Assembly (NCBI GenBank): GCA_937625935.1
Contig: OW569377.1
Location: forward strand, 310,001 to 374,000
DNA: 64,000 nucleotides
Direction: 5' to 3'
Source of the DNA: Tetramitus jugosus
Taxonomy: Eukaryota; Protista; Heterolobosea
Part shown: positions 10,725-31,917 of the stretch, piece by piece
Layout: the number at the start of each line of letters is the position of its first letter
How positions within the stretch are numbered: the first letter of the stretch is position 1
Notes under the pieces: generated by a model
The model's database searches: none
Told to the model about the DNA's origin: nothing
Seen by the model: only the letters and a program-made list of their open reading frames with translations
Made by a program: the position numbers and the translations under genes

Positions 10725-13700
10725 TTACTCTTGCCCATCATAAAATAGAGAAAAGAGCATTGTGGGCACATCCACTACATGTCTTCTCAGAGCTTCTTTT
10801 ATACTTTTCATGTCCTCGTTTCTTACCTCGGATTCTTTTGGCCACAATCGGACCTTGTTGTATAGTTGTTCCGATTGCAACGGATGCCTGTTAATATAAT
10901 GGAAAATAGTAGTCAAGATTTCAATCATCGAATGAGCAGAAACGTGAGGTACGAGATCCGTCAGGAAGGTAAAGGGTCTCCTGATCCACTGTCCCTTGTT
11001 TAAAATAGAGAGAATCAGTAATGTTCGATTCATTAATGATCGTTCCTCTGATACCTTCTTCGACTGTGGTACGATCAAACTCCAATCACCAATCAAATTT
11101 ACAATCAAACTGAATATCACAAAATCAAACGCGAGTAATCTCTCCGGATCATACTCAGCAATCAAATCGAGTATAGAGTACAGAATCGGGAATTTCAAGA
11201 ACATTTTTGCCAAAAAGATGTCCTTCTCAAACATTGGTTTCTTTGGTAGAGACTTGCAGTACTGTTCGTAAGTAGTTGTCAGTGAATAGATACGCAATCG
11301 GTTGAAAAGCTGAGAGGAGAGATACTGTGTTGCATCAGGAGATGAAAGGCACACAGTTATCAGGTGAATGACCGAAGCACTATTCCTCTCAATCAACTTT
11401 TGACTCTCGATATCTATTGCATTCTTATTGGATCTACGGGCTAAACTTCTGGAAGTTAAATGCATATGAACTTTTTGCGGATTAACAATCACAACACCTC
11501 GAGCTTGCAAATCGTTAAGCAAGTCAGTGTTCGCATGGTTGATATCCAGTCCTTCAGGGTTTATCATGGTTGAAAGTTCTCTCAGTAATGAAGGCTTAGT
11601 TTTCTCCGTTTTCGTCTTTTGAGGCTTTTTATGCCAATGCGAAAATAGAAAATCTGGTTGATTGTATTGTCCTTGTTGGTTCTGATACTTTGGTAGAGAG
11701 TCGTTCAATAACTCAACAATAGAGCTGTATTCTTGTAGCGGAAAATGGCATTGCTCATAAATTTGTCTCGACATTACAACATCTTGAGAATGCAATCGGG
11801 ACTCTGAGTGACGTGCAAATATAATATTGAACACGAAATTAAATAGACTATCGGTAATCTTTGGATTTGATTGCACCAATTGACTCAGAATAGTACACAA
11901 TTCGTTCTTTAGACTATCGATCCGTATTCCTCGTTGTTCATATCCTGATACGAAATCTCGATAAAATTCAATGTTTGATTTGTCTCGTTGATAATCCAAA
12001 TTATTTGACGAGCTGTTTGTTTCCATGCTTTGCACTTGGTCATTCTTCGGAGGCAATGGCTCAAGTACAAAAACAAAGAAAGAAACGACAGCACTTGCCA
12101 TACCGGATAAAATATACTTGGGTATCTTTTTGCGATGTAGGTTGAGCTCTTCCAGTGTTGTGTGGATCATCGTTAAGCAATTCATTGGATTGACTCCAGG
12201 CTCTCTTGGCTCATGGAACAAATATGGATAGAACGTCTGCCAATTCATGATAATCATTCGATACAAATAGTGCTTATACACAAAACTCTGTTCGCTTTTA
12301 AATTTGAGGTATTGTACCCATTCACATAAATTGTTTAAAATATTTACAGAGGTAGAATCATCTGTTTCTGAATGACTCTCGATGTGCGCTGATATCTCGA
12401 AGAACATCTTGTCAATCACATTCTGATCAAAGTCATGCAGATTAATCGAAAAAGTATTGAATAAGTTGATGAATAAAGAGCCAATAGAATTCCAAGCGAA
12501 ATTTGAGATTATATAGATCATAATATTGGTTGCGGTCGTGATTGAGGATAGACCTAATAACTCTGCAATGAATAACCATTTGTTGTTTGTGTGATCCTTA
12601 TCATCTTGAATCAAGTTCTTCAATACGTCTTGCGTGTTGTTCGATATCTCTGCTATTGATCTCAAGCTCTTCTCGTCGATATTTCGCGAGACATCTTGCG
12701 TTTCTGACATGTTCAAAAGCACGACATTTCGTTGATAGAGCGCGATAACTCTCATTAGACATGCTTCGAGAGTAGATTTAACAGATTGGTTCGGATGTGT
12801 CTCACTCAATGACATTAGTGCAGATAAACAATTAAATGTTTGATCTGCCAACTCATCAATTCTTCGACAGAGTAAATAACCAAACACGTCATCTCGACTT
12901 TCCTCGACATGATAAGGTACAAATGCTAGGGTGTTTTGACCGATTCGCTCCTTCACAAACTCAATCAAATCCTTAGTAAAAATGTTTAAAAATCCTTTGC
13001 ATTCTGCGATCAGTGTTAAAAACAGTGCAAAGAATAACTCATTCTGATACGTCCACTCACTTGCTCGACTCTGAATCAACAGATCATTCAAATGTGAGCC
13101 GATAAACGTGCGAATAAGTTTTGGATACTTTTGACACACGCACTCAAAAATGACTATAAACTTTTTGAGTAATCCTGTGCCATACATGTTGCTCAACATT
13201 CGAATTAAAATGGACTCGTCAAACAAATTCGGAAGAGAATTCCAATTTCCCAATTCCTTGTGCGTTATAATCAATATACTAGCCAACGAATAGCTTGTAA
13301 TTGGGAAAGGGTACTGTAGCGCCAGATAAACACAGATCCATTGATGTTGTGCACACTAAAAAACATGTTGTTTGAGTCACATGGCACTCCATAAAATTAA
13401 CAAAACACCAAAACACAAAAAGAGGTTCATGATGTGTACTTACCGATACAGCCCACATGAGATCCTCATAACGGACATCAATTTCATTACTCAGAGCGTC
13501 TCTAATTGAATGGATCTGAGCATCTCTTGATTGAAGCATCTGAATCTGATTTACACCATCGATAACAAACGTATTGGTACTCAATTGATCCGACACTGAC
13601 AATTTCAACAAGGCGAGTAAATTTTGACAAAACATGTCACGTTCCATCTCACCAATCACTTGCAACGCATCAGGACCACTGGCAAACTCAATCTCTTCAC

Positions 13701-15403: not shown

Positions 15404-15790
15404 TTACTTGTTGGTGAAGCTCAACATGGTCATCATGTTATCATATGGTCTCATCTTCTTCTTGTGAACATTGCGCACTTCCACCAATTTTTCATCCTTT
15501 TCATCAATCGAGTCATCATCATCATCATCCATCATCATGGCATCCAATTGTTGTTGTTGTTGTTGTTTTCTAGCTTCAACAGATGCTCTTCTTCCACTAG
15601 TACTACTATTGACAGTACCACCACCATTCGCAACCGACTTTCTTCTCTTACTGGTAGTGGTCGCTCCACTATTGCTGTTACTATTCGCACCATTATTGCT
15701 ACTCTTCTTCTTTTTTGATTTTGAAGCTTTGATTTCCTTTGTTGATAAATTCATGTCATTCTCTGGAGTCAAATTGTTGTTTAGTGTAGG

Positions 15791-15824
<34 letters not shown>

Positions 15825-16882
15825 GGTGAAAGAATAGAGTGCTCAGCGCCATCAAGTAGTGAAAAAGAGTCATTAAAAGTGTGATGCTGTTGTTGATGTT
15901 GTTGAAAATGATTATTATTATTGTTGTTATTGTGATTGTGCATCATGTTATTGTTCATGTGATGTTGCAAAATGGATTGTTGTTGTTGTTGTGATTGTGG
16001 ATGATGATGATGATGATGCATGGAATGAGGTTGATAGTAAGCTTGTGGTTGTGGTTGTTGATGGTGGTGTTGATGATGATGATTGAGATTTGGCAAAGGT
16101 GGAGTCATTGGTGAAGTGGTGGTAGTGTTACATAGGTGTTGTTGTTGTTGTTGGAGGTGATGGTGATGATGATGATGATGAGAATTGTTATTATTGTTCT
16201 TGTGATTTCCATTCAACACTTCTGACATGTACGCTTGAATCATTTGTTCCTGCAAGTTTGAGCTACTATGGTTATTATTATTATTATTATTGAATGATAA
16301 TGGTGATGATAGATATGACTGTTGTCTTTGTTGATGTTGATGTTGCGATGGAAGGAATGTTGGTGAAGAGGATTGATAAACATGTTGTTGTTGATGATGA
16401 TGATGATGATGAAATGGTGAAGATGAGGATGATGATGATGATGATGACATGGATGGAGAGTCAAGCATATGAACTGGGACATCAATGTAATCCTTTCTTC
16501 CTTCCAAAACTTGCATAATTTCCATGACTACATTAACAAAATCAATATTCCGATAAATATTTTCGACTAACCGCTGTTCTTGTGTAGTGGCTTGCGCACT
16601 CATGTTATTATGATTGTTGTCAGATGAGAGTGAAGGTGATGAACCTTGTTGAATTTTGGTCAAAATGTATTCTTGTTGTTCTGGACTGAGCATACCCATC
16701 AGTGATGTTGCTAAGCTTGAAAAATCTGCAGCACTACTATCATTGTTGTGACGATTGTTGCTATTGTTGCTATTGTTGTTATTGTTATTTTGATAGTGAT
16801 TGTTGTTCATGATTGGAGAGTGTTGTTGTTGTGGATATTGTTGTTGATGGAAATGGTGGGTTGTTGTTGGGAGAGAGTTCAT
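15404..16882 (-). CDS. 492-aa N/H/Q-rich low-complexity protein with basic clusters
   Basis: Continuous ORF with short structured islands (LSPEQQEYILTKIQ; IDFVNVVMEIMQVLEG) and the basic clusters KSKKKK and KRRKS. Confidence 0.65.
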
Positions 16883-17185: not shown

Positions 17186-18121
17186 ATGAATAATCAAAAC
17201 AAGGTCATATACAGAGGGGTTGTCATTGTCTCCATAGTTGCTATCATTCTCATAACTTGTGGGATCTGTCAGAATGAGAGGGAAGATAGGAGAGGGAGCA
17301 AACAATTGAACAGCTTGATTTCAGTTGCTATCCAAAATGGACGGAAGAGTGATCAATTCCTGACTATCCTGCCCCCAAATTCTCTTCTCGAAAAGGCCAT
17401 CCCTTCATCCTGCTCTAGGCAATTGTATGGCATTGATTTACTCAATTCAGGCACTTTTGTTGGAGCTCTGGCTCGAGTGTACAACAGCAGTACACTGCGA
17501 ATCGGTGTCAGCACTCAGGCAAACTCCGAGCAGTTCTCAATCAACGGTTTAGGAGTTGTATCAGGTTTTCTTGCTGATGTTAGTCGACTTGTCACTAATC
17601 AAATGGGAATGATTCTAGGGAGAGAAATTGTTCCTTCTTTCGTTAGTTACCACTTCAATTCCTATTTTGAGGACACAATTGACTTGATCAACAGTGGAAA
17701 TGTTGACACTGTGGTGGGTGTTGTTTTTTTGACTTCCCGAGCTCGTAGTGTTGATTTCACTTGTGTTTTTGCGGATGCTTACCCACTAGCAATTTTCACT
17801 AATTCAGCTGTTGGCTTACCACCAGAAGTGGGAGTTCCTTCAAGTATCAAGGATTTGAATCGAGCTCAAATTCGAGTGTCAATTGTCAAAGGTTCGTTCA
17901 GTGAAAGTGTCGCAGAGAGATTCTTTCCATTGGCTAAGAGAGTGTATTTCGCTAAAGGAGATGATGCTTTCAACGCTGTGGGAAGAACCACGGATATTGT
18001 GTGTGATGATATGAACACTGTTGCGTTGTACAATGCCCAAAATCGGAATCGGTTAACCCTTGTGGAACACACTGAAACCTTGGTTGTCGGAGGGAATGCA
18101 TTCATTACAAAGAAGTATTAA
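17186..18121 (+). CDS. Solute-binding protein family 3 (PBP type 2)-like protein with N-terminal signal/TM anchor, copy 1 (SBP1)
   Basis: Hydrophobic N-terminus, then TLRIGVS, GFLADV, LINSGNVDTVV, SRARSVDFT, SIKDLN...RVSIVKGSFSE, DAFNAVGRTTDIVCDD: the SBP_bac_3 motif order. Confidence 0.85.
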   Translation: MNNQNKVIYRGVVIVSIVAIILITCGICQNEREDRRGSKQLNSLISVAIQNGRKSDQFLTILPPNSLLEKAIPSSCSRQLYGIDLLNSGTFVGALARVYNSSTLRIGVSTQANSEQFSINGLGVVSGFLADVSRLVTNQMGMILGREIVPSFVSYHFNSYFEDTIDLINSGNVDTVVGVVFLTSRARSVDFTCVFADAYPLAIFTNSAVGLPPEVGVPSSIKDLNRAQIRVSIVKGSFSESVAERFFPLAKRVYFAKGDDAFNAVGRTTDIVCDDMNTVALYNAQNRNRLTLVEHTETLVVGGNAFITKKY

Positions 18122-18140
18122 AATGATGGTTGGCTAGTTC

Positions 18141-20576
18141 CTACTTACTACCAACTTCCACATAGGGACAAAAGTTTGGAGCTCCAAGTCTTTCGTTCAA
18201 TTCAATCAATGGCTTGTCTCTGGGATATTCTGACAACAACTTCAAAACCAAAGAGTGAGCAGAGTCCAAATTGTTCTCTTCAATGAGTTGACTCACTTGA
18301 CATGTGCCGCTTTCCAGTTCTTTCTGTTTTTCTGTTGCTTGTTCTCTCTCACTCAACACTTCAAAAACATGAACTAAGGATGATTACAGAATGATGAAAG
18401 ATAATTAGGTGTCAGTAATTAGGGTTCCAACCAACGTTATGACAACAAGAAGAAAGAAGTACATACTGGGTTGAGATTTTCCTTTGACACAAACAAATGA
18501 AATCCATCGACAAACAAATTGTTCTTGAACTGCTTCTTTCGTCTTCGGTCCAATCATCAGTGTTGTATCATATCGTTTGTTGAGTGACATCAATCGACTG
18601 GCAACATTGACTGCATCACCCAATGCAGTGTAATTGACTCGAGATCGACTTCCCACATTCCCAACATAACACATATCTGTATTCACTCCCATTTGAATCG
18701 CAATACTGGGAAAGCCCCTCGTTATCCACTCTTGATTCAATTCACATACTCGGTGATAAACTTTACAACATGCTCGAATTGATCTGATTTCGTGATCATC
18801 AATACTCAACGGTGCATTGAATAGACACATGATTCCTTCAGATAGGTACTTGTCGATTACGCCTCCTTCATCAGTTATAATTTGAGAGAAAGAAGTGAAC
18901 ATGATTTGCAACATTTCCACAATGAGATTTGGTGAGAAATCCTTGGTGTCCTCTACTCTTGTTTCGATGAACACAATTGTCGTTCTTCTCCTCACAACTC
19001 CGAGTTTAGCACTTGCATTTCTTGAAATTAACACTCGAACAACATCTGAAGGCACATAGGCATCAAAACATCGAAGTCCATTTTTCAATTGCTTGATGGA
19101 TTCTGTCATGACTGACATCTCAAAGAATGAATGAGAGTGAACCTTGTTTCGACGTGCAAAGTTCATCTTTGTAATTTTCACAAATTCTTTCGAGATTTCA
19201 TACAATGGAACTGAAATCAGTATGCTGAGGATGAGAGCAATCAGAAGCGATCCAATGATAGTACAAATTGTCACAATGGCCAAGACTCGGTTTGACTTGT
19301 CCACGACCTTCAGAACAACTCCTTCTGACAGTACGTTTATCAAGTTCCAATTGAGACCAAAATTATCTCTGAATCCAATGAGGGATATCTGCCTTTTCTT
19401 CCCCGTGGAATCAACAAAATTCAAACCAACAAAACTTCTAGGATTTACAGCCAGAGGTACTCCTAAAGAAGCTACTATAACCTCTGCTGATTCCCGAATC
19501 ACAAAATCTGTGCTGTTTCTTGCGTCGACCATTTTGGGATTGTTAGGATCAGTTTCATCGGTAATGTTTCCACTGTTCGCAGCAACTAATGTCATATCGC
19601 TCTGCACAACATACAATCTTGTTTCTGGAAAAACAACAAGAGATTTCAAGAAGTCGGAAAGAGTTTGGAGATTGATTCCAACGCTAAATACACCATAAAA
19701 GCTCCCATCATTCACATCAAAGTATGGTCCGCTCACTGCCATAGTCATGTGAGGAGGCCGTGTTATGGTGAAGAGAATGGGCCCCCATTGAATCGCTCCC
19801 GTCTTCTTTGCATTCACATACCAAGATCGTTCGGTTGGAAAATATCCACGGTGGACATCGTTTGACCTAGGAGCTACATCCAACAAGTTGTTCGTTTGAT
19901 GATTGAACAGAATTCCATCTCCATGCGATAATCCCATTATGAACCTTTGAGGAGGAACAGCAGTATCGTTAATCATTACCCCAGTGAAGTAATTGTAACG
20001 TGTTCCGTACCATATCGTTGTGATTTGGGGATTTTTAAGTTGACTGAACATGAATATCTCTTGAATTTTTCTACTTTTCTCATTACTAGAGTCACTGAAA
20101 CTAAGCCCAGACCGATCTCCCCATTCAGTATCCTTTATCAATGTTTGAACAAGAAAGGGTCCAGCTGACACATAGTTTTGCAAGTGATTCAGCACTTGGA
20201 GGGTCAACAAGTCTCTTTGAATCTTGGTCTCTTGTCTAATGCCATTCCGTATCACAAAGTAATTAAACAACCAGAGTGAGACTCCAATGGCCACCAGGGA
20301 AGCCAATAGAGTCACGAGAAAAACAACACTGAAACTCCAAGAGAATCGAAGCACCTTCAAAATCATGCAAAAAACTCGTCGTTTTCCTTTCTCGTTCGTG
20401 CTCGGTTCAAATGCATTGCACCATGGGTGAAGATGATCTTCTTCAGTGCAGGATGCTTCTTTGGGAAAAATATCGGGTGAATGTGGTTGAGGGTTCATTG
20501 TCTGATCATTGTGCTGTGAAGGGAGAGAATGCTCTGTACTGATCACAGGGCGATTCCACTCTAGTTCTCGAGACAT
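18141..20576 (-). CDS. Receptor-type class III adenylate cyclase-like protein (TM-Cache-TM-HAMP-cyclase), copy 1 (AC1); intron 18374..18466, ~780 aa
   Basis: Two TM helices flank a Cache-like domain (YFPTERSWY...WGP...SGPYFD). These are followed by HAMP-like ISVPLYEISKEF, YVPSDVV, GGVIDKY, GNVGSRSRVNYTALGDAVNVASRL and VKGKSQP|IHVFEV after splicing GTATGT...TTAG. Confidence 0.9.
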
Positions 20577-21024
20577 TTGTGCACTGTGGTGGTGTTATTG
20601 TCCTTGAACAGAAAGACAGGAATGTTATGTGATTGTAGTTGCAAAAATAGTTCAGGAAGGAGATCAATTTCCCATTACATATCATCCTGAACTTTATCCC
20701 AAATCGCTCAAGTCGCGAGATTTTACCCACACTGAACACTTATTTTTAACTGTCAGGTCAGTCAATTCCAATACAAGTCGATTCAACATGATGAAACGAT
20801 GATCGAGACAAAAAGAATCAGTTCATACAGATTGAATCTCTGCAACAAAACGACACACGACAAGGCCGCACCACACTGATGGCTTCTGAGAAGCTGTGAA
20901 ACCAAAATAGGCACCGATTTGTACTTGTGTTTGTCACATTGGATCTTGCACGGTCTATTTTGGAAAGAAATCTTCACATAACATTTCCTGATCTTTCTGG
21001 GTGGAAAACCAAAACACATCACAA

Positions 21025-23500
21025 ATGTCTCGCGAAATGGATGTGATCGGTTCAGAACATGCTCTTCCACAATTCAACAATCCTTCGGTAGGGGATGAAA
21101 GAAGCAGGAGCAATGACGCACAAATGATTCCTCCACCGTTTTCAGGTGATGAAATTTTTCCGAACTATTCCAAAGAAAGTTCCAGTGCTCTTGGTCATCG
21201 CCATTATCATCCATGGGGTAAACTGTATGAACCAAGTTTTGAAAAAGGCAGGCAGAACTTGAGTTGTGTGATATTGAAGGTGCTTCGATTCTCTTGGAGT
21301 TTCAGTGTTGTTTTTCTCGTGACTCTATTGGCTTCCCTGGTGGCCATTGGAGTCTCACTCTGGTTATTCAATTACTATGTGATACGAAATGCTATTAAAC
21401 AAGAGACCAAGATTCAAAGAGAATTGTTGACGTTCCGAGTGCTCAATCATTTGCAAAACTTTGTGGCCTCGGGACCCACTGTAGTTCAGACAATTATCAA
21501 TGACATGGCGTGGGGAGATCGATCTGGTTTGAACGTCAGCAACACGAGGAATGAAACGAGCAGAAGAATTCAAACAATTTTATTTTTTAGTCAACTGAAG
21601 GATCCGAGAATCACAATAGCATGGTTCGGAACTCGTTACAATTACTTCACGCACGTTATGATTAACGATACAGTAAATGTTCCTCCTCGACAATTCATGT
21701 TGGGAATTTCAAACGGGGATGGGATACTGTACAATTACCCCATGAATGACTTCTTGGATGTAGCCCCTAGGTCACCTGATGTCCAATTCGGATATTTCCC
21801 AACCGAACGTCCTTGGTATGTTGCAGCACAGACGACTCGTGCAATTCAATGGGGTCCTATCGTCTTCACCATAACGCGACCAACGTATCTGACTGTTGCA
21901 GTGTCCGGACCATACTTTGATGTGAATGATGGTAGTTTAGTTGGCGTAGTGAGTGCTTCGATTAACCTACACACTCTTTCCGACTTCTTGAAATCTCTTG
22001 TTGTTTTTCCAGAAACAAGATTGTATGTTGTGCAGAGTGATATGACACTAGCTGCTGCGAACAGCGGTAACATTACCGATGAAACTGATCCTAATAATCC
22101 CAAAATGGTTGACGCAAGAAACAGCACTGATTATGTGATTCGGGAATCAGCAGAGGTAGTTGCCCAAGGGTTCGGGGTGCCAATACCTGTCGATGTTAAC
22201 CGTAATATTGATTTAAAGTTTGTTGATTCAACAGGAAAGAAGAGAGAAATAGAAGTCGTTGGATTCCAAGACGATTTTGGTCTCAGTTGGAATTTGGTCA
22301 CAGTGATATCAGAGTCCGTTGTTTTGAAGGTTGTGAACCAATCAAATAGAGTCTTGGCCATTGTTACAATTTGTACAATCATTGGGGCACTTCTAATTGC
22401 TCTCGTCATCAGCATGATGATATCTGTCCCATTGTATGGAATCTCGAAAGAGTTTGTGAAAATTGCAAAGATGAACTTTGGTCGTCGAAAGAACAAGATT
22501 CACTCTACACCATTCTTTGAGATTTCAGTCATGACAGAATCCATCAAACAATTGAAAAATGGACTGCGGTACTTTGATGCCTATGTTCCTTCAGATGTTG
22601 TTCGAGTGTTAATTTCAAGGAATGCAAGTGCTAAACTCGGCGTTGTGAGAAAAAGAATATCAATTGTTTTTATCGATACTGGGTTTGAGGAAACGACTGA
22701 TTTCTCACCGAATCTTGTTGTGGAAATGTTGCAAATCATGTTCACTTCTTTCTCTCAAATTGTGACTGATGAAGGGGGAGTGGTTGATAAGTATATTTCG
22801 GAAGGAATCATGTTCCTTTTCAATGCACCACTGAGTATTGATGATCACGAAATCAGATCAATTAGGGCCTGCTGTAAAATCTCTCAGAGAATTAGTGAAT
22901 TGAATCAAGAATGGATAAAGAAGGGTTTTCCCAACATCTCGATTCAAATGGGAGTGAACACGGACATGTGTTTTGTGGGGAATGTGGGAAGTCGATCTCG
23001 AGTCAATTACACTGCATTGGGTGATGCAGTCAATGTTGCCAGCCGATTGATGTCACTCAACAAACGATATGATACAACACTGATGATTGGACCGAAGACG
23101 AAAGAAGCAGTTCAAGAACAATTTGTTTGTCGATGGATTTCATTTGTTTGTGTCAAAGGAAAATCTCAACCCAGTATGTACTTCTTTCTTCTTGTTGTCA
23201 TAACTTTGGTTGCAAACCCTAATTACTGACACCTAATTATCTCACATCATTCTGTGATCATCCTCAGTTCATGTTTTTGAAGTTGTGAGTGAGAGAGAAC
23301 AAGCAACAGAAAAACAGAAAGAACTGGAAAGTGTCACATGTCAAGTGAGTCAACTCATTGAAGAGAACAATTTGGACTCTGCTCACTCGTTGGTTTTGAA
23401 GTTGTTGTCAGAATATCCCAGAGACAAGCCATTGATTGAATTGAGAGGAAGACTTGAATCTCCAAACTTTTGTCCTTACGTGGGAGTGTGTACCAAATAG
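21025..23500 (+). CDS. Receptor-type class III adenylate cyclase-like protein, copy 2 (AC2); intron 23174..23267, ~793 aa
   Basis: ATG at 21025 (MSREM, cf. MSREL in AC1). Same architecture and intron position as AC1, and splicing gives an intact frame to the stop at 23500. Confidence 0.9.
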
Positions 23501-23575
23501 ACTCGCATCCTGACCTTTGAGACGTGAACTAACTAAGAGCTTTCACAATAATGTATTTACAAAAGATCGAATCAA

Positions 23576-24538
23576 TTAAAGTGATGTTATGAAAACACTT
23601 CCTCCAGCAAAATTGACCTTTGTTTTTTCCAGAATTGCCAATCTATTGTCATGTAGTTGGTTATACAGGTATACATTGTCCGATTCATAAAACACAATGT
23701 CAGCCATCTTTCCCACAGCGTCGAATACTTCATTGTCAGTGTTGAAATATACCTTTTGGGCAAGAGGCAAGAATTTGGTTGTTGCTTCTTCATAAGAAGT
23801 GTCTGGAACAACGGCCACTCGTATTTCGGGTCTGTTCAAATCATAGATGGATGAAGGAGTGGCGACATTGGGTGGCAATGCTTGGAATGCATCCCTAAAT
23901 GCTGCAAAGGGAGAAGAATCCAAGTAGGGGCAAGAGAAATCGGCGAATGGTACTCGGGAGGCCAAGAATGCAACATCGAGTACTGTATCGACCTTTCCAC
24001 TTTTGTTCAGAAATTGGAGCGAATCGACGAAGAATGACGTAAAGTTGTACACGACAAAGGAGGGACGAATATTCTTACCCAGAATCAATCCCATACCATT
24101 CGTCACCAACGTTCCAACATCAGCCAGAATCCCTTGAGCCACGCCTGTTGTTTGATTGATGGAAAACACTTTGGCATCGTTGATTGCTGTAACTCCAATC
24201 CGGAGGATTCCATTTTTGTATACTGTTGCCAACGCTCCTTCAAATGACTTTGGGTCCGAAACATCTAGGTCATACAACTCCCTGGGGCAAGAAGTTTTGA
24301 TTGGAGTCGGAATGATTCTCAATGGGTCAATTGTACCGAATTCACCACTGTTTCTACCATTTTTGATGGCGACTGACATCACATTGTTGAGTTGTTTGTT
24401 TCCTCTGGAGTTGCTATCATCGTTGCTTGTTTGCATGAACACAAGGGATGATGAGTCCAAACTGATGATGGTGAGAGTCAAACAGAAGCCGATGATCACT
24501 GCAAGTGGTAGAAAACTAAATCCTTTTTTGTTCGTCAT
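23576..24538 (-). CDS. Solute-binding protein family 3-like protein, copy 2 (SBP2)
   Basis: First ATG at 24538 (MTNKKGFSFLPLAVIIGFCLTL). Motifs ILRIGVT, GILADV, SGKVDTVL, SRVPFADFSCPY, SIYDLN, DIVFYE. Confidence 0.85.
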   Translation of the reverse strand: MTNKKGFSFLPLAVIIGFCLTLTIISLDSSSLVFMQTSNDDSNSRGNKQLNNVMSVAIKNGRNSGEFGTIDPLRIIPTPIKTSCPRELYDLDVSDPKSFEGALATVYKNGILRIGVTAINDAKVFSINQTTGVAQGILADVGTLVTNGMGLILGKNIRPSFVVYNFTSFFVDSLQFLNKSGKVDTVLDVAFLASRVPFADFSCPYLDSSPFAAFRDAFQALPPNVATPSSIYDLNRPEIRVAVVPDTSYEEATTKFLPLAQKVYFNTDNEVFDAVGKMADIVFYESDNVYLYNQLHDNRLAILEKTKVNFAGGSVFITSL

Positions 24539-24794
24539 TTTGCCTTGGATTTTCACAAAGTTAATTGTATCCTGAGATCACTCCCGAGAAATATTTGCGG
24601 GATCATAGTATTTTGGCTTCCTTACAAAAAATAATTTCATTCTCGGCAATTTTAAGGAATGAATTGTTTCGATCGAAACCTTCCGGAGGTTTTATACCAA
24701 CCTAAATGAAACTGGGATGATTTTCATCCGCTGAAACATTACCGATTGGGCGCGTTGCACATTTCCACTTCCTTATCAGATAAAACAGAGTAAG

Positions 24795-27414
24795 ATGGAA
24801 AATAGAAGGTACAACACTGAGATCTTGGGCAGAAGCGACCCATTGGTAATAGAACCATCGTCCAGTGGCAATTCTTGTTCAAACCACATGAGACCTCTGA
24901 TTCGCGAACAAACTTTTCCTCTGGACACCTCCCATACACTCGACTTGATGACTCCTCTTAATCAAATTCATGAATCTACCCAAAGGGAATCATCTAGCAA
25001 CAACACGATTAATGATCAACCAATTTCAAACTACTCTATGCCCAATTCTTCAACAGTCACTACCGATCATCATCAAAGGGAATTCTCAAGTGATAGTCGA
25101 GAAGGAGGGTATCCGTGGTGTCAAAAGTATGAACGGAGTAGTGATAGAAAAAAGAAGAATCGTCGTCCCAAGAAGAGAGAAAACATCTGTTTCAAATTGT
25201 TGCGGTTGTCTTGGAGCTTTAGTGCAGTTTTTCTTGTAACTCTGTTGACTACACTGATTCTTGTTGGCGTCTCAGTATGGTTATTCAATTATTTTGTCAT
25301 ACTAGGGGGCGTGAGGAATGTGGCAATACAACACCGAGATATTCTTATGGCTCAAGTCATGGATCATGTCAACAATTTTGTGTCCAAAGCACCACTCGTG
25401 GTTCAAGCTGTGACTCAAGAGATGAGAATGGGAGATGTGTTAGGATACAACTTTAGTAACTCTCGAATTGAGAAGAGCAGGAGAATACAAGAAATATTAC
25501 TGTTCAGTAAATTGAAGAACCCAATGATCTATGGTGTGTGGTATGGCACTCACGATAATTACTTCACTGGACTCACGATTGACGATAAGAGGAAACCCCC
25601 GCAGCAATACTTACTGGGGCTGTCCAATGGAGATGGAACCGTACAAAATATTCAAGTGAATAATGAACTCAACCGAGCACCTAATGCGACTTTTGTTTCT
25701 ACTGACTATTATCCCACGAAACGTCCTTGGTACACTCCCGCAGAGACAACCAGAACAATTCAGTGGGGTAAGGCGTACCCCACTGTGAGTAGTACACCTC
25801 TACTCATGGTATCGGTATCGGGTCCCTATTTCGATACTCACAATGGCAGTTTGTATGGAGTACTAACTGCCGGGGTTAATTTGGAATCTCTCTCTGAATA
25901 TCTCTCCGCGCTTTCGGTGTTCCCTAAGACGAGAATATTCATTGTTCAACCTGATATGTTGTTAGTTGGAGTGAACTACGGAGACATAGTCAATAACTTT
26001 GATCCTGCTCATCCCGAAATGTTAGATGCTCGGAATAGCTCCGATAGTGTAATCCGGGAAACAGCCCAAAAAATGGTTCAAAGATACACCGTACCTTTAC
26101 TACCGCAAAATCTACATCCCAAGGACTTTAAGTTCAAAGATTCAAAGGGCATTTCTCGACTCGTAGGGATCTCCTGTTTCCAAGACTCATATGATCTTAC
26201 ATGGGTTATTGTGTCAGTACTATCTGAGAGTGTTGTCCTGCAAGTTGTGGATCGGTCTAACAGAGTTTTAGTCATCGTGACTATTTGTACGATCATTGGA
26301 GCACTTTTGATTGGGTTTATCATTAGTGTCATAGTATCAGTCCCCTTGTATGAAATCTCAAGAGAGTTTGTGAAAATCACAAGGATGAACTTTGGAAATC
26401 GAAAGCACAAAGTTCATTCTCTTTCCTTCTTTGAGATTGCGGTCATGACTAACTCAACCAAACAATTGAAAAATGGATTGAGATGCTTTGATGCCTATGT
26501 TCCTTCATACGTTGTTCGAGTCTTGATGACAAGAAATGCCAGTGCTAAACTCGGGGTTGTGAGAAGGAGAATGACAATCGTCTTTATTGAGACAAGTTTC
26601 GATGGCACGAATGGTTTTTCAGCTGATATCCTAGTGGAGATGCTGCAAATCATGTTTACCGCTTACTCTCAAATTGTGACCGATGAAGGAGGCGTAATCG
26701 ACAAGTATCTTTCTGAAGGAATCATGTGTCTATTCAATGCACCGTTGATTATTGGTGATCACGAACTCAGATCGATTGGGGCATGTCGTAGGATATCTCA
26801 AAGAACTGAAGAATTGAACGAAGAATGGAGGAACAATGGTTATCCTTGTATCTCGATTCAAATGGGAGTGAACACGGACATGTGTTATGTTGGAAATGTG
26901 GGAAGTCGATCTCGAGTCAATTACACTGCATTGGGTGATGCAGTCAATGTTGCCAGTCGATTGATGTCACTTAACAAACGATATGATACAACACTGATGA
27001 TTGGACCGAAGACGAAAGAAGCAGTTCAAGAACAATTTGTTTGTCGATGGATTTCATTTGTTTGTGTCAAAGGAAAATCTCAACCCAGTATGTACTTCTT
27101 TCTTCTTGTTGTCATAACTTTGGTTGCAAACCCTAATTACTGACACCTAATTATCTCACATCATTCTGTAATCATCCTCAGTTCATGTTTTTGAAGTTTT
27201 GAGTGAGAGAGAACAAGCAACAGAAAAACAGAAAGAACTGGAAAGCGGCACATGTCAAGTGAGTCAACTCATTGAAGAGAACAATTTGGAATCTGCTCAC
27301 TCGTTGGTTTTGAAGTTGTTGTCAGAGTATCCCAGAGATAAGCCATTGATTGAATTGAACGAAAGACTTGAAGCTCCAAACTTTGATCCCTTCTTGAAAG
27401 TAGGTCATAAATAA
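24795..27414 (+). CDS. Receptor-type class III adenylate cyclase-like protein, copy 3 (AC3); intron 27088..27181, ~841 aa
   Basis: Same architecture as AC1/AC2: YYPTKRPWY Cache motif, cyclase core, and an identical intron position. Confidence 0.9.
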
Positions 27415-27438
27415 TAAAATACAAATTATACAAATTGT

Positions 27439-28374
27439 TTAATTTTTCTTTGTAACGAACGCTTGTCCACCAGTATAGACTGTTTGCGTGTTATTAACAA
27501 CGAGTAATCGATTGTCATTGTCGGCATTGTAAAGAGCAACTTCGTTCTCATCAAAAAAGGCAAAATCTGCCGTTCTGCCCACTGCATTCAAAACATCTGA
27601 AATCTTGGTAAAGTACACCTTCTTTGTTAGTGGGAGGAACCTTATTGCGGCGTCTTCTAGAAATGTGCCTCGGAGGATTGACGCTGTAACATTCGGTAAG
27701 TTCAAATCCTCGATACTTGCAATTGCTCCTATCCCAGTTGGTAAACCAACTTTTGTGTCCACGTACGCCGAAAGAGGATAAGCTTCCTGATAAATACAGG
27801 TGAAATCAGCACTAACAGAACGTGAAGCCAAGTAATAAACACCAATGACTGCATCAACCCTTCCACTGTCGAGCAAAGCCAGGGTGTCTGTGAAGAAGGA
27901 CGTGTAGTTGAAACGAACGAAAGAAGGAACAATTGTCTTTCCCAAAATCATTCCCATTTGATTGGTGACGAGCCAACTGACATCAGCGAGAAATCCTGTG
28001 GCAACTCCTGAACTGTCAACAGAAAACAGTTGTGGGTCTCTCTGATTACTAACACCGATTCGGAGTGTACCATTGTACACTCTGGCCAGAGCACCGACAA
28101 AAGTACTTGGATCAAATAAATCAATGCCATATAATTGTCGCGAGCAGCTTGATGGAATAGGTGGTCTGAGAATAGAGTTTGGTAATTGAATGGTTAAGAA
28201 CTCGGCACTGTTTCGTCCATTGTTGATGGCCACGGACATGACATTGTTCAACTGTTTGAAACCCCTAATTTCAGTCTCATTGGATTGAGAGTGAACGCTT
28301 GTGATCAAACCGATCGCGACAACAGAGATAAGGGTGAGAACGAAATGGATAATAAACTTGTTGTGAATGTTCAT
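27439..28374 (-). CDS. Solute-binding protein family 3-like protein, copy 3 (SBP3)
   Basis: Signal/TM N-terminus, then TLRIGVS, GFLADV, LDSGRVDAVI, SRSVSADFTC, SIEDLN, LRGTFLE, DFAFFD. Confidence 0.85.
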   Translation of the reverse strand: MNIHNKFIIHFVLTLISVVAIGLITSVHSQSNETEIRGFKQLNNVMSVAINNGRNSAEFLTIQLPNSILRPPIPSSCSRQLYGIDLFDPSTFVGALARVYNGTLRIGVSNQRDPQLFSVDSSGVATGFLADVSWLVTNQMGMILGKTIVPSFVRFNYTSFFTDTLALLDSGRVDAVIGVYYLASRSVSADFTCIYQEAYPLSAYVDTKVGLPTGIGAIASIEDLNLPNVTASILRGTFLEDAAIRFLPLTKKVYFTKISDVLNAVGRTADFAFFDENEVALYNADNDNRLLVVNNTQTVYTGGQAFVTKKN

Positions 28375-28539: not shown

Positions 28540-31500
28540 TTAATCTAGAGAAACACCAAGCTTGTGTTCTGATTGAGCCGATTCTTCAACTGTCGACTGC
28601 GATCGACGCTGCGTCATGAGAGGGATGTATTTGTAAGGGGTGGCTGGTTCATACCACTTTGTTACTGTGTCTACAGGGATGGTCTTATGATTCTCATCCT
28701 TGTTCTTGTAATTGTTTCTCCACACATTCCTCTTTCGTATCAACCAGTGAAGCAAGGAAACCAAAGGTATACACACCAACAACAGAAGAGCCAGAGAAGC
28801 CATAATGACAGTATGTGGAATAAATCGTTTGTCCGCAACAATCTTGGAACCATAGAAAAAGCACTGAAATGCAACAAAAATGAAGCAATTGCCTAACAGA
28901 ATTCTAACATTCATAATTGCCATTCTCTGGTGATTCAAAAAATCACTCTTGAAACCGAGCGTGGCACCGTTGAATGAAATATGTCTCCGATGTCCATAAG
29001 TATCATTTATGATTGCTCTGTCAATAAAGTACTTGTAAACGAAATAGAGCAGACCACAAGGTAAAACAGCTGGAGAGAATAGCGAATACGCCAACGTTAT
29101 AGACAACACCCAATGCATGTACGCATACTCGTACTCTAGGTACAAGGCAGTTTGTTCTGCAGCTTTCAGCTTCTCTACTGCTGTCATATAACGAGCAATT
29201 TTAGGGGAAATTCTCCTCCATATCTTCTGCGCAAATCGTATGTCAATTACATAAAATATGAGGTTTGGGATTCGATACAAGTCCAATGAATTCTTCAACA
29301 GGCCCTTTTGCAGCAAAATATTGATAAAGAAACTACCTGAGGCAGGTAGGAACAAATTTTGGAATGCCTTCTCCCAAATTTCATTTCCCGTAAAATACTT
29401 GACAATTCCATCAAAACTGGTTAACAGAATACTGGGAATGATCAATGTACTGAGAACCAAGTAGATGTATGATCGCTCAACAATCTTCCTCTGTACAAAT
29501 CCATGAGTATTATTCTTCGAATTAATGGCAGTAAAATAAATAATTGATGGCATGATACTCGATGCAATAAGTACTACCAACGAAGGAATATACTGAAAGA
29601 TCAAGTTGCCTACTGTTCCTGTTAATCGTAAGAGCCACGCGGTTGAAATTGTAATAAATTTCAGATTGAGAAATGACTGAACACCGGATGCGATTGACAA
29701 AGGTGAACAGAACAAAACAAATACAATGATGAGAAATATGTGAATCAGTACTCGTCGAATAAAATAGACTAATCCTCCATCTCTGAAACCAAAAATATTA
29801 TTCATCTCCATATCTTCAGGCTCAAAGTCCAATCTCGAAATTCGAAGTGAGAAAAAGCTGAAGTAATCTAATCTACGAATAAGATTGGCTGCGGTACTCT
29901 TCCCCTTTTCTGTAACATCAAATTGAATCTTTTTGATCTTAACAAGTGTGTCGCTAATCAATTGAGACTCTGTGTTTTGACTTTCATCTTCATTCTTCTC
30001 CATTTCATCGGGATTAACCTCTACAAGAGGAATATCCAACGGCGTTATCTCCTTTGTTTTTTTGTTTTTGAGAAAAGGTATTCCTTTGACCACTGATAAA
30101 GTATTTTCAATTTCTTTCTGTTCAATTCGTAAACCTCGGAATCTATAATACCTGCAAAAACTTCGAGCTGCCTCCACTGTATCAAAAACAATAATTCCAA
30201 ATCCACTGCTCTTTGGAGGTTTGATTTTCTTCGTGGCAACCATACTTTCATAAAACAAGTTCTCAGCAGGCTTAATGAAGCTCGACTCACCCTGTTTAGC
30301 ATTTTGAACCATATATGTTCTTGCGTATAATGCATCCCATTGAGCTATATCCCTTTCTAAATACTCTATGTGTTTTGTATAGTATTCAATCGCGTCGTAG
30401 GATCTGCGCACATGAAACTTTCCTCCGTCAAAAACATCTCTTCCACAGCAACTTAACACTGACACTGGTGAGTTGTCCTTCTTTCTTCTCATCTCATACT
30501 GAACATGCTCCAGCTGTTCCTTCAATAAAATTAACCGATTTTCTAACTCAACTCTCTTCCGCAAATCAGGAATCAACACTGCCTTCAGGATATGATTATC
30601 TAATTGTTTGTCAGACACACACTTCGCTGCCGAATGGACAATATCCAAGAAAGCTTGTTGATTCATTAAGGGAGGTATTCCCCTAATTGATACACAGAAA
30701 GGACTGGCAAGAAAGACAGAGTTTGTGCTTGAATCTAACTCCTCTTTCGTACGAGCCACACTCATTCCCAACATCGTCATTCTCGCCCATAGTGGTCTCA
30801 CTGTATTCCAATCAGTCATCTTCACCAAATAATTTTCATCAAAATCGGTTGAACAAAACTTTTCGTCATCTGCTGACTCGTAGTTGATTGTTCGAATAAT
30901 AGGGTGGCACAGAAACCGTACAATGCCAAACATGAAAAACAACAAGATAAACAGAATAGTCAACCCCACATGCAAATATAAAATATTTGGCTCTTTGAGT
31001 CGCATGTTGACACTCGTTCTCAACAAAAAGGTGCTTGAACTTCGATCAACATCCGGTGGAAGTGTACCAGTCAGATGCACAGGCAACAATGAACCCAATC
31101 CGATTAAAGAACATGCACCCAATGCAAATATAAGCATCTGCTGGAAGAAAACATATGCCGCCATATCACGACCATACTTTTCTGTGAGTCGATCACGATC
31201 TCTGTGTCTCATGGATGGAATAATAAGAGTCATCAGCGTTACCCACAAGAACACTATGCGATTCACCCAAAACTTCACAAACTTTCGCAAAAAAAGCACA
31301 ACCTTGTTGTACGCTCTTCGAAGGGGCTTGCTAGACTCCTCAACAACAATTTCAGTCGGCTCCGTTGCGAATGACACTGTCTGAGGCGATGAAATCGTAT
31401 TCTGCTCGTTTGATACGACTGGTGACGAATCAATCACCTCGCCGTCCTCTACAGAAAGCTCTGAATCAGCATTTTTGCTCTTGCTTGCAGCATTCAAAGT

Positions 31501-31917
31501 AATGGTCGTTCGTTGTGCCCTCTCGAGTTGTTCAATCTGCTCAGAACGCTTCTGACGGTCATGACTTGACGATTCTTGTGGCGTCGAAGGGTATTCCTCA
31601 TCGGGCCGCCGTACATGCTTCTTTTGCGCCAAAATCATCTCCAGCAATTTCTCCTTGTACCGTCGATTGAACATGCCACAGCAAGGTTGCAAGAAGAGCA
31701 CATAACCAGAAACAAGCAAAAATGCCAGAATAATATTAATGTAAAATGTGACGTCTACTCCACCATCTCTGAGCTTATCGAAAAAATCGGTAGAATTCTT
31801 GGTTGCATTGTTCGCTTCCACAAGAAAACTATCGACAATAAATTGGGAAATGTCCTTTGTGTTTGCCGATGGCATTGTGGATGCAAATGCCCATTTATTC
31901 TCGTATGAATCATCCAT
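28540..31917 (-). CDS. OSCA/TMEM63/CSC1 family calcium-permeable stress-gated channel
   Basis: Multi-TM 1125-aa ORF with YVFFQQMLI...LLPVHLTG, GFGIIVFDT, PEDMEMNNI and YAYMHWVLSITLAYSLFSPAVLPCGLLYFVYKYFIDR (RSN1_7TM-type). Confidence 0.88.
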   Translation of the reverse strand: MDDSYENKWAFASTMPSANTKDISQFIVDSFLVEANNATKNSTDFFDKLRDGGVDVTFYINIILAFLLVSGYVLFLQPCCGMFNRRYKEKLLEMILAQKKHVRRPDEEYPSTPQESSSHDRQKRSEQIEQLERAQRTTITLNAASKSKNADSELSVEDGEVIDSSPVVSNEQNTISSPQTVSFATEPTEIVVEESSKPLRRAYNKVVLFLRKFVKFWVNRIVFLWVTLMTLIIPSMRHRDRDRLTEKYGRDMAAYVFFQQMLIFALGACSLIGLGSLLPVHLTGTLPPDVDRSSSTFLLRTSVNMRLKEPNILYLHVGLTILFILLFFMFGIVRFLCHPIIRTINYESADDEKFCSTDFDENYLVKMTDWNTVRPLWARMTMLGMSVARTKEELDSSTNSVFLASPFCVSIRGIPPLMNQQAFLDIVHSAAKCVSDKQLDNHILKAVLIPDLRKRVELENRLILLKEQLEHVQYEMRRKKDNSPVSVLSCCGRDVFDGGKFHVRRSYDAIEYYTKHIEYLERDIAQWDALYARTYMVQNAKQGESSFIKPAENLFYESMVATKKIKPPKSSGFGIIVFDTVEAARSFCRYYRFRGLRIEQKEIENTLSVVKGIPFLKNKKTKEITPLDIPLVEVNPDEMEKNEDESQNTESQLISDTLVKIKKIQFDVTEKGKSTAANLIRRLDYFSFFSLRISRLDFEPEDMEMNNIFGFRDGGLVYFIRRVLIHIFLIIVFVLFCSPLSIASGVQSFLNLKFITISTAWLLRLTGTVGNLIFQYIPSLVVLIASSIMPSIIYFTAINSKNNTHGFVQRKIVERSYIYLVLSTLIIPSILLTSFDGIVKYFTGNEIWEKAFQNLFLPASGSFFINILLQKGLLKNSLDLYRIPNLIFYVIDIRFAQKIWRRISPKIARYMTAVEKLKAAEQTALYLEYEYAYMHWVLSITLAYSLFSPAVLPCGLLYFVYKYFIDRAIINDTYGHRRHISFNGATLGFKSDFLNHQRMAIMNVRILLGNCFIFVAFQCFFYGSKIVADKRFIPHTVIMASLALLLLVCIPLVSLLHWLIRKRNVWRNNYKNKDENHKTIPVDTVTKWYEPATPYKYIPLMTQRRSQSTVEESAQSEHKLGVSLD

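Follow-up and report, generated by a model that had tools for sequence, protein, structure and literature searches.

The question raised by this locus is whether bacterial-type solute-binding proteins (SBPs) serve as ligand-capturing subunits of receptor cyclases in a eukaryote. In a 64,000-nt stretch of the Tetramitus jugosus genome (contig OW569377.1, positions 310,001 to 374,000; hereafter the window, to whose first letter plain coordinates refer), three genes for transmembrane (TM) receptor cyclases, AC1 to AC3, each lie tail-to-tail with an SBP gene, and the earlier note on this DNA had proposed that each SBP feeds its neighbouring cyclase in a sensing system with cAMP output. On balance we favour a different answer: a cassette of two genes from a bacterial-style toolkit for surface sensing was triplicated locally, without the genes forming dedicated pairs, and the cyclases are half-site enzymes that probably need a partner.

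The gene order is SBP1(+) AC1(-) AC2(+) SBP2(-) AC3(+) SBP3(-). SBP1 (17186-18121, + strand, 311 aa) was predicted to encode a circularly permuted SBP of family 3 (amino-acid type) with an N-terminal signal or anchor helix; SBP2 (24538-23576, - strand) and SBP3 (28374-27439, - strand) encode proteins of 320 and 311 aa, respectively. AC1 (20576-18141, - strand, 780 aa, intron 18466-18374) has the architecture TM-dCache-TM-(HAMP-like linker)-class III cyclase domain, which is shared by AC2 (21025-23500, + strand, 793 aa, intron 23174-23267), and AC3 (24795-27414, + strand, 841 aa, intron 27088-27181) completes the set. Database queries were single exons, and exon-joined models were used for placing stops and aligning paralogues. 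Each cyclase gene carries one intron of 93-94 bp near its 3′ end, and once this was included the three tail-to-tail pairs were found as described, with stop-to-stop gaps of 19, 75 and 24 bp. The divergent spacers AC1/AC2 (20577-21024, 448 bp) and SBP2/AC3 (24539-24794, 256 bp) also had the sizes given earlier; no similarity between the two, including common promoter motifs, was found. The domain order TM-Cache-TM-HAMP-cyclase held for the TM helices, the dCache domain, which is flanked by two hydrophobic helices, and the cyclase domain. For HAMP (PF00672) no Pfam match at E 0.1 was obtained behind the second TM helix, and a HAMP-like segment may be read from the linker of about 100 residues located there. 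Modules 1 and 3 were homologous across the AC/SBP junction (78% over 2050 bp), which bears out the co-duplication claimed before and indicates that the AC-SBP pair was the unit of duplication.

Linkage was counted genome-wide, in 26.35 Mb on 56 contigs (the assembly was reported as 26.3 Mb in 55 scaffolds plus the mitochondrion; PMC11106597), and among close copies it was confined to this locus, with 5 of 8 SBPs and 10 of 13 cyclases solo; within the genome, the first outcome that the earlier note had named as counting against its proposal thus largely applies. Of the eight close SBP copies, three belong to this cluster and three form a tandem array on contig 30, with single copies on contigs 31 and 3; the contig 3 copy (L013:8780-9450), with an in-frame stop and an unrecognisable N-terminal part, is probably a pseudogene. 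No cyclase was present near the five copies elsewhere, either in the roughly 9 kb read to the left and to the right or, by coordinates, within 85 kb, and the surroundings of the 10 remaining cyclases of the AC1-3 clade, read over 10 kb in each case, contained no SBP or SBP relic. Five of these solo cyclases have ectodomains 61-71% identical to those of AC1/AC2, such ectodomains standing alone on contigs 44, 45 and 3, and neither blastn nor tblastn revealed relics of a lost partner beside the solo SBP or cyclase copies. The contig 30 trio (L012:63-3307; L036), SBP2-type genes in tandem after an FkbM methyltransferase gene, lies beside the same methyltransferase in a related strain, where the region is syntenic at about 94% DNA identity. 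In another protist assembly, SBP relatives were neighboured by WD40, RCC1 and phosphatase genes and by no cyclase. The AC relative P0022 also has a tail-to-tail neighbour, but the translation of that neighbour is sirtuin-like, and the locus is orthologous to that of the solo contig 44 copy. The cross-species view of the locus itself consisted of one related contig, ending at the SBP3 stop. Scanning the genome_contigs collection for a bacterial donor or a bacterial SBP-cyclase operon gave no relative, and the nearest bacterial match, P0010, has no receptor neighbour. Word-based homologue searches turned up a small number of relatives, none of them a named Naegleria sequence, and being length-limited they are uninformative on fusions. 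Gene linkage is thus weak evidence for an SBP-receptor function: since partners in eukaryotes need not be linked, the solo copies take away the chief reason for assuming pairs but do not disprove them.

In the SBP tree, SBP1 and SBP3 grouped with the contig 31 copy and SBP2 with the contig 30 trio (61-63% identity, versus 44-46% to SBP1/SBP3), whereas in the ectodomain tree AC1 and AC2 fell together with AC3 as the outlier. The ectodomain of AC2 (21370-22341, + strand) is 71% identical to that of AC1 (19296-20264, - strand) and 47% to that of AC3 (25287-26255, + strand). Approximately unbiased (AU) tests, performed on quick trees with constrained groups picked to mirror the partner tree, rejected a forced SBP1+SBP2 clade (p 4e-11) and a forced AC1+AC3 ectodomain clade (p 8e-4). 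This incongruence shows that the sensors and their neighbouring SBPs did not co-diverge, contrary to what cognate pairs predict. In contrast to the 47-71% identity of the ectodomains, about 450 bp at the cyclase 3′ ends are near-identical in the three genes (98-100% in coding windows, 87-93 of 93-94 bases in the intron), which indicates local gene conversion; in AC2 the tract spans approximately 23000-23460 (+ strand), that is, the 3′ end of the cyclase domain, the intron and the last exon. Conversion between AC1 and AC2 could itself have caused the mismatch of the trees, yet the sensor would then have been swapped without its supposed partner. Most likely, therefore, the cluster represents one old AC-SBP tail-to-tail adjacency, duplicated twice long ago and then reshuffled by gene conversion that homogenised the cyclase 3′ ends while sensors and SBPs diverged independently, both families also having copies on other chromosomes without the neighbour.

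Three dedicated cognate pairs, each producing cAMP upon ligand delivery by its own SBP, would account for the tail-to-tail SBP at all three cyclases here and for the continuous homology over the junction. Such pairing is disfavoured by both AU tests and by the solo paralogues, including the AC1/AC2-like ectodomains standing alone, as well as by the loss of catalytic Asp residues described below, and we consider it improbable. The near-identical 3′ ends, together with a second version of SBP2 differing by about 5%, could also hint at an assembly artefact of uncollapsed haplotypes. However, the copies diverge far beyond alleles, with amino acid identities of 44-55% among the SBPs and 47-71% among the ectodomains, and 4.7 kb comprising SBP3 and the flank upstream of it matched an independent metagenome contig at 97%, so that an artefact is very improbable.

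The catalytic residues of the cyclase domains are incomplete in a consistent manner. The metal-site Asp pair reads E/E in AC1, D/E in AC2 and E/E in AC3, the G-D of the second site is replaced by S-E, and the phosphate-binding Arg is replaced by Gln in all three; in AC3, the substituted positions are E599, S640-E641 (metal sites) and Q689 (phosphate-binding Arg), and K637, T711, N718 and R722 are kept. Across the 13 cyclases of the AC1-3 clade, the second-metal-site G-D is changed to S/P/A/N-E in every member, and the substrate residues K and T and the transition-state residues N and R are retained in every member, with the domains under purifying selection (dN 0.07-0.10 versus dS 0.43-0.49, non-synonymous and synonymous divergence, respectively). 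In mammalian cyclase the catalytic residues are split between the C1 and C2 halves (PMC4174876), and by their residues AC1-3 and the 13-gene clade are assigned as C2-like half-site cyclases. The claimed cAMP output is ruled out for AC1-3 by themselves if the loss of the metal Asp residues inactivates them. More than 20 dCache cyclases are encoded in the genome, including intact paralogues on contigs 30, 50, 40, 12 and 43, that is, complementary Asp-bearing subunits. Two further paralogues show the reverse defect, with both metal Asp residues kept, N changed to H and R to N on contig 20 (L029:2526-5849), and N changed to T on contig 26 (L025:3501-6719); these are candidate C1-like partners, judging from the alignment. 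Each of the two also has about 350 additional N-terminal residues, without a convincing Pfam match there. The coexistence of intact and mirror-image C1-like paralogues suggests that the receptor cyclases act as heterodimers. As homodimers AC1-3 would thus yield little or no cAMP, and they would instead serve as ligand-sensing subunits that share one active site with Asp-bearing dCache-cyclase paralogues, as do mammalian C1 and C2. About a dozen open reading frames (ORFs) of 1190-1270 aa, in which the cyclase domain is very degenerate and Cache-like regions occur, were also observed genome-wide, as were at least 130 RGS matches.

As for the ligand of the receptors themselves, the AlphaFold model of the AC3 ectodomain (pLDDT 90.5) had dCache chemoreceptor domains as its best PDB matches. 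The amino-acid sensor motif dCache_1AA consists of YxxxxRxW plus a downstream Tyr and Asp (PMC8915833). In the present domains it is incomplete: YxxxxRxW is retained, the downstream Tyr occurs in AC3 only, and the Asp that binds the amino group is Gly or Ser (Gly in AC3), as assigned by motif spacing. With that Asp missing though YxxxxRxW is kept, the domains are not canonical amino-acid sensors, and they may bind some other small ligand directly, probably in the dCache pocket.

The assignment of the SBPs to family 3 stood, as a type II periplasmic-binding fold was recovered both by the AlphaFold model (pLDDT 88.3) and by structure matches, the best being AncCDT-1 (5t0w; Z 18.2, root-mean-square deviation 2.4 over 192 residues) and relatives of cyclohexadienyl dehydratase (CDT). 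The Pfam profile PF00497 scored below its gathering cut-off (21.2 and 24.5 versus 26.4 bits; SBP1 E 2.6e-4) with no match for SBP2, partly because of the permutation, and a genome scan with it missed every SBP copy, so more distant SBPs may be uncounted; a profile search recovers the family members at 1e-30. Residues 93-311 align to amino-acid-binding proteins and end about 30 residues before the C-terminus of the latter, and a profile built on the helix at the N-terminus (about residues 38-62 in SBP3) matches the C-terminal helices of bacterial ArtJ and GlnBP (E 1e-4 to 4e-4), all of its top eleven matches being members of this family or bearers of its domain. It follows that the family is circularly permuted, with the C-terminal helices shifted to the N-terminus. 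The carboxylate-binding Arg is invariant (R185 in SBP3), as is a cysteine pair (Cys77/Cys193 in SBP3); the pockets of SBP1-3 have an acidic residue present and a hydrophobic residue where the Thr of the hinge motif was expected, and the remaining pocket positions differ among paralogues. The SBPs, like the cyclases, are under purifying selection, dN being well below dS. The genome scan gave no ATP-binding cassette (ABC) permease of the type BPD_transp_1 (PF00528), with 14 of 14 controls detected, and in another eukaryote a more distant member of the permuted family is fused via a TM helix to a kinase (P0013; L049:10001-11997), an arrangement that speaks for the fold being used in sensing. Together these two observations make a sensing role of the SBPs plausible, and we picture them as secreted or membrane-anchored amino-acid-type binders that would capture or present solutes at the cell surface.

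The SBPs might instead act outside cAMP signalling, as surface scavengers concentrating amino acids for eukaryotic permeases or endocytosis or as CDT-like enzymes derived from the fold, with the cyclases being decoys or dominant-negative regulators. The structural matches to AncCDT-1 and CDT relatives, the varying pocket residues and the many degenerate cyclase domains in the genome fit this. On the other hand, AncCDT-1 is a reconstructed ancestor that scores well for any divergent family member, and, with K, T, N and R retained throughout the 13-gene clade, a working half-site is a better fit than a dead decoy; we regard this explanation as unlikely.

Several observations weigh against the answer preferred here. 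Partners in eukaryotes may interact without being linked, the solo copies notwithstanding; the change of Asp to Glu may leave residual cyclase activity; adjacency was kept in all three copies despite synonymous saturation between SBP2 and SBP1/3; and a second cluster exists on contig 27 (C27:452049-456942), where a distant SBP relative (-), a PBP_like_2 gene (+) and a NIT-cyclase-like-RGS gene (+) lie within 5 kb, as read from coordinates only. The SBP relative, one of three further and more distant ones recovered by profile search, adjoins the PBP_like_2 gene and is 3.2 kb from the cyclase-like domain of the NIT-cyclase-RGS gene. The chance of such proximity is about 0.12, this being one case among six other loci in a genome of which about 2% is that close to a cyclase domain.

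These points bear on a split receptor at the level of the families, in which free SBPs deliver ligand promiscuously, not 1:1, to dCache (and NIT) receptor cyclases, a loaded SBP docking on the ectodomain of a half-site subunit and switching the cyclase heterodimer in the manner of Vibrio ScrB-ScrC or NspS-MbaA. Consistent with this are the second SBP/receptor cluster, the missing BPD_transp_1 permease, the service of the permuted family as a receptor-kinase ectodomain elsewhere, the joint occurrence of SBP2, AC3 and SBP3 in one probable RNA run, and the bacterial precedent of ScrB-ScrC, in which a dCache-like sensor has an SBP_bac_3 partner (PMC8050422); moreover, the dCache pockets have no amino-group Asp, whereas the SBPs retain the carboxylate Arg. 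However, at 5 of the 7 independent SBP loci there is no cyclase domain closer than 16 kb, the contig 27 adjacency is by itself not significant, and with YxxxxRxW kept the Cache pocket may bind a ligand of its own. We rate the split receptor as a possible but clearly less likely alternative to the triplicated cassette.

Independent sequences bear on expression and gene models. The intron at the AC2 position was skipped as GT..AG in a soil metatranscriptome contig. Run X9, from the same organism, covered SBP2, AC3 and SBP3 and left the SBP2/AC3 spacer uncovered, with a poly(A)-like end at 27434, 3′ of AC3; for these reasons the run, of unrecorded library type, probably represents RNA, and the SBPs are probably expressed. 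Its SBP2 contig differs by about 5% from the assembly, probably as a second haplotype. The same contig reaches across the AC2 stop (23416-24461), which suggests that the 3′ untranslated regions of AC2 and SBP2 overlap.

Around the cluster, an OSCA/TMEM63-like (RSN1_7TM) channel gene lies immediately upstream of SBP3 (28540-31917, - strand), a long low-complexity ORF rich in His/Gln/Asn and without a Pfam match is divergent from SBP1 (15404-16882, - strand), and a match to the Integrator subunit 5 C-terminal domain (PF14838, E 8e-17) was found at 10725-13286 (- strand).

The arrangement resembles the bacterial SBP-stimulated dCache receptors (Vibrio ScrB-ScrC with an SBP_bac_3 partner, NspS-MbaA and LuxP-LuxQ; PMC8050422) in that a free family-3 SBP gene stands beside a dCache receptor with second-messenger output. 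It differs in that it occurs in a eukaryote, the genes are convergent and form no operon, the output domain is a class III cyclase, the SBP is permuted, most paralogues are unlinked, and any SBP-receptor interaction is putative; a review of such receptors lists four receptor families, with no adenylate cyclase among them (PMC8050422). A bacterial-type Cache adenylate cyclase, thus likewise a Cache receptor cyclase in a heterolobosean, was reported from Naegleria (PMC4822843); unlike that single protein, more than 20 dCache cyclases and a 13-gene half-site clade occur here. Unlike mammalian C1/C2 and the alpha/beta subunits of soluble guanylate cyclase (PMC4174876, PMC8815786), the halves would be separate two-TM receptors with many paralogues, each with its own dCache, in what we infer to be heterodimers. 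Trypanosomatid receptor adenylate cyclases (PMC7719234) also combine a periplasmic-binding fold with a protist receptor cyclase, as do cyclases of T. jugosus itself with several fused Peripla_BP_6 domains (C49:272789-277047, C39:420650-425096, C33:80562-84948), similar to the trypanosome receptor cyclases; in those the domain is fused and of another SBP family, whereas here the binding protein is a separate gene. Similarly, the SBPs share the type II fold (Z 16-18) and the carboxylate Arg with the SBP_bac_3 proteins AncCDT-1, ArgBP and GlnBP, but differ in the circular permutation, the invariant Cys pair and the lack of any ABC permease found. Cache cyclases in heteroloboseans, heterodimeric cyclases and SBP-stimulated receptors are thus each known, and it is their combination here that appears to be new.

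No description of SBP-fed receptors in a eukaryote was found in the searchable literature, which has few subscription papers. To our knowledge, little has been established about how heterolobosean amoebae, to which Naegleria is related, detect food and set off cAMP signalling. One conceivable, though rather doubtful, scheme is a three-component cAMP system for sensing amino acids or prey that needs no input from G protein-coupled receptors, with free permuted SBPs feeding combinatorial heterodimeric dCache cyclases made up of C2-like sensor subunits and Asp-bearing subunits; if the SBPs do feed the receptors, a bacterial signalling principle would operate in a eukaryote. A second lead would be the permuted amino-acid-binding proteins themselves, as an orphan family acting at the cell surface. 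The 13-gene set of half-site receptor cyclases with its complementary partners would constitute a combinatorial heterodimer code among bacterial-type receptors.

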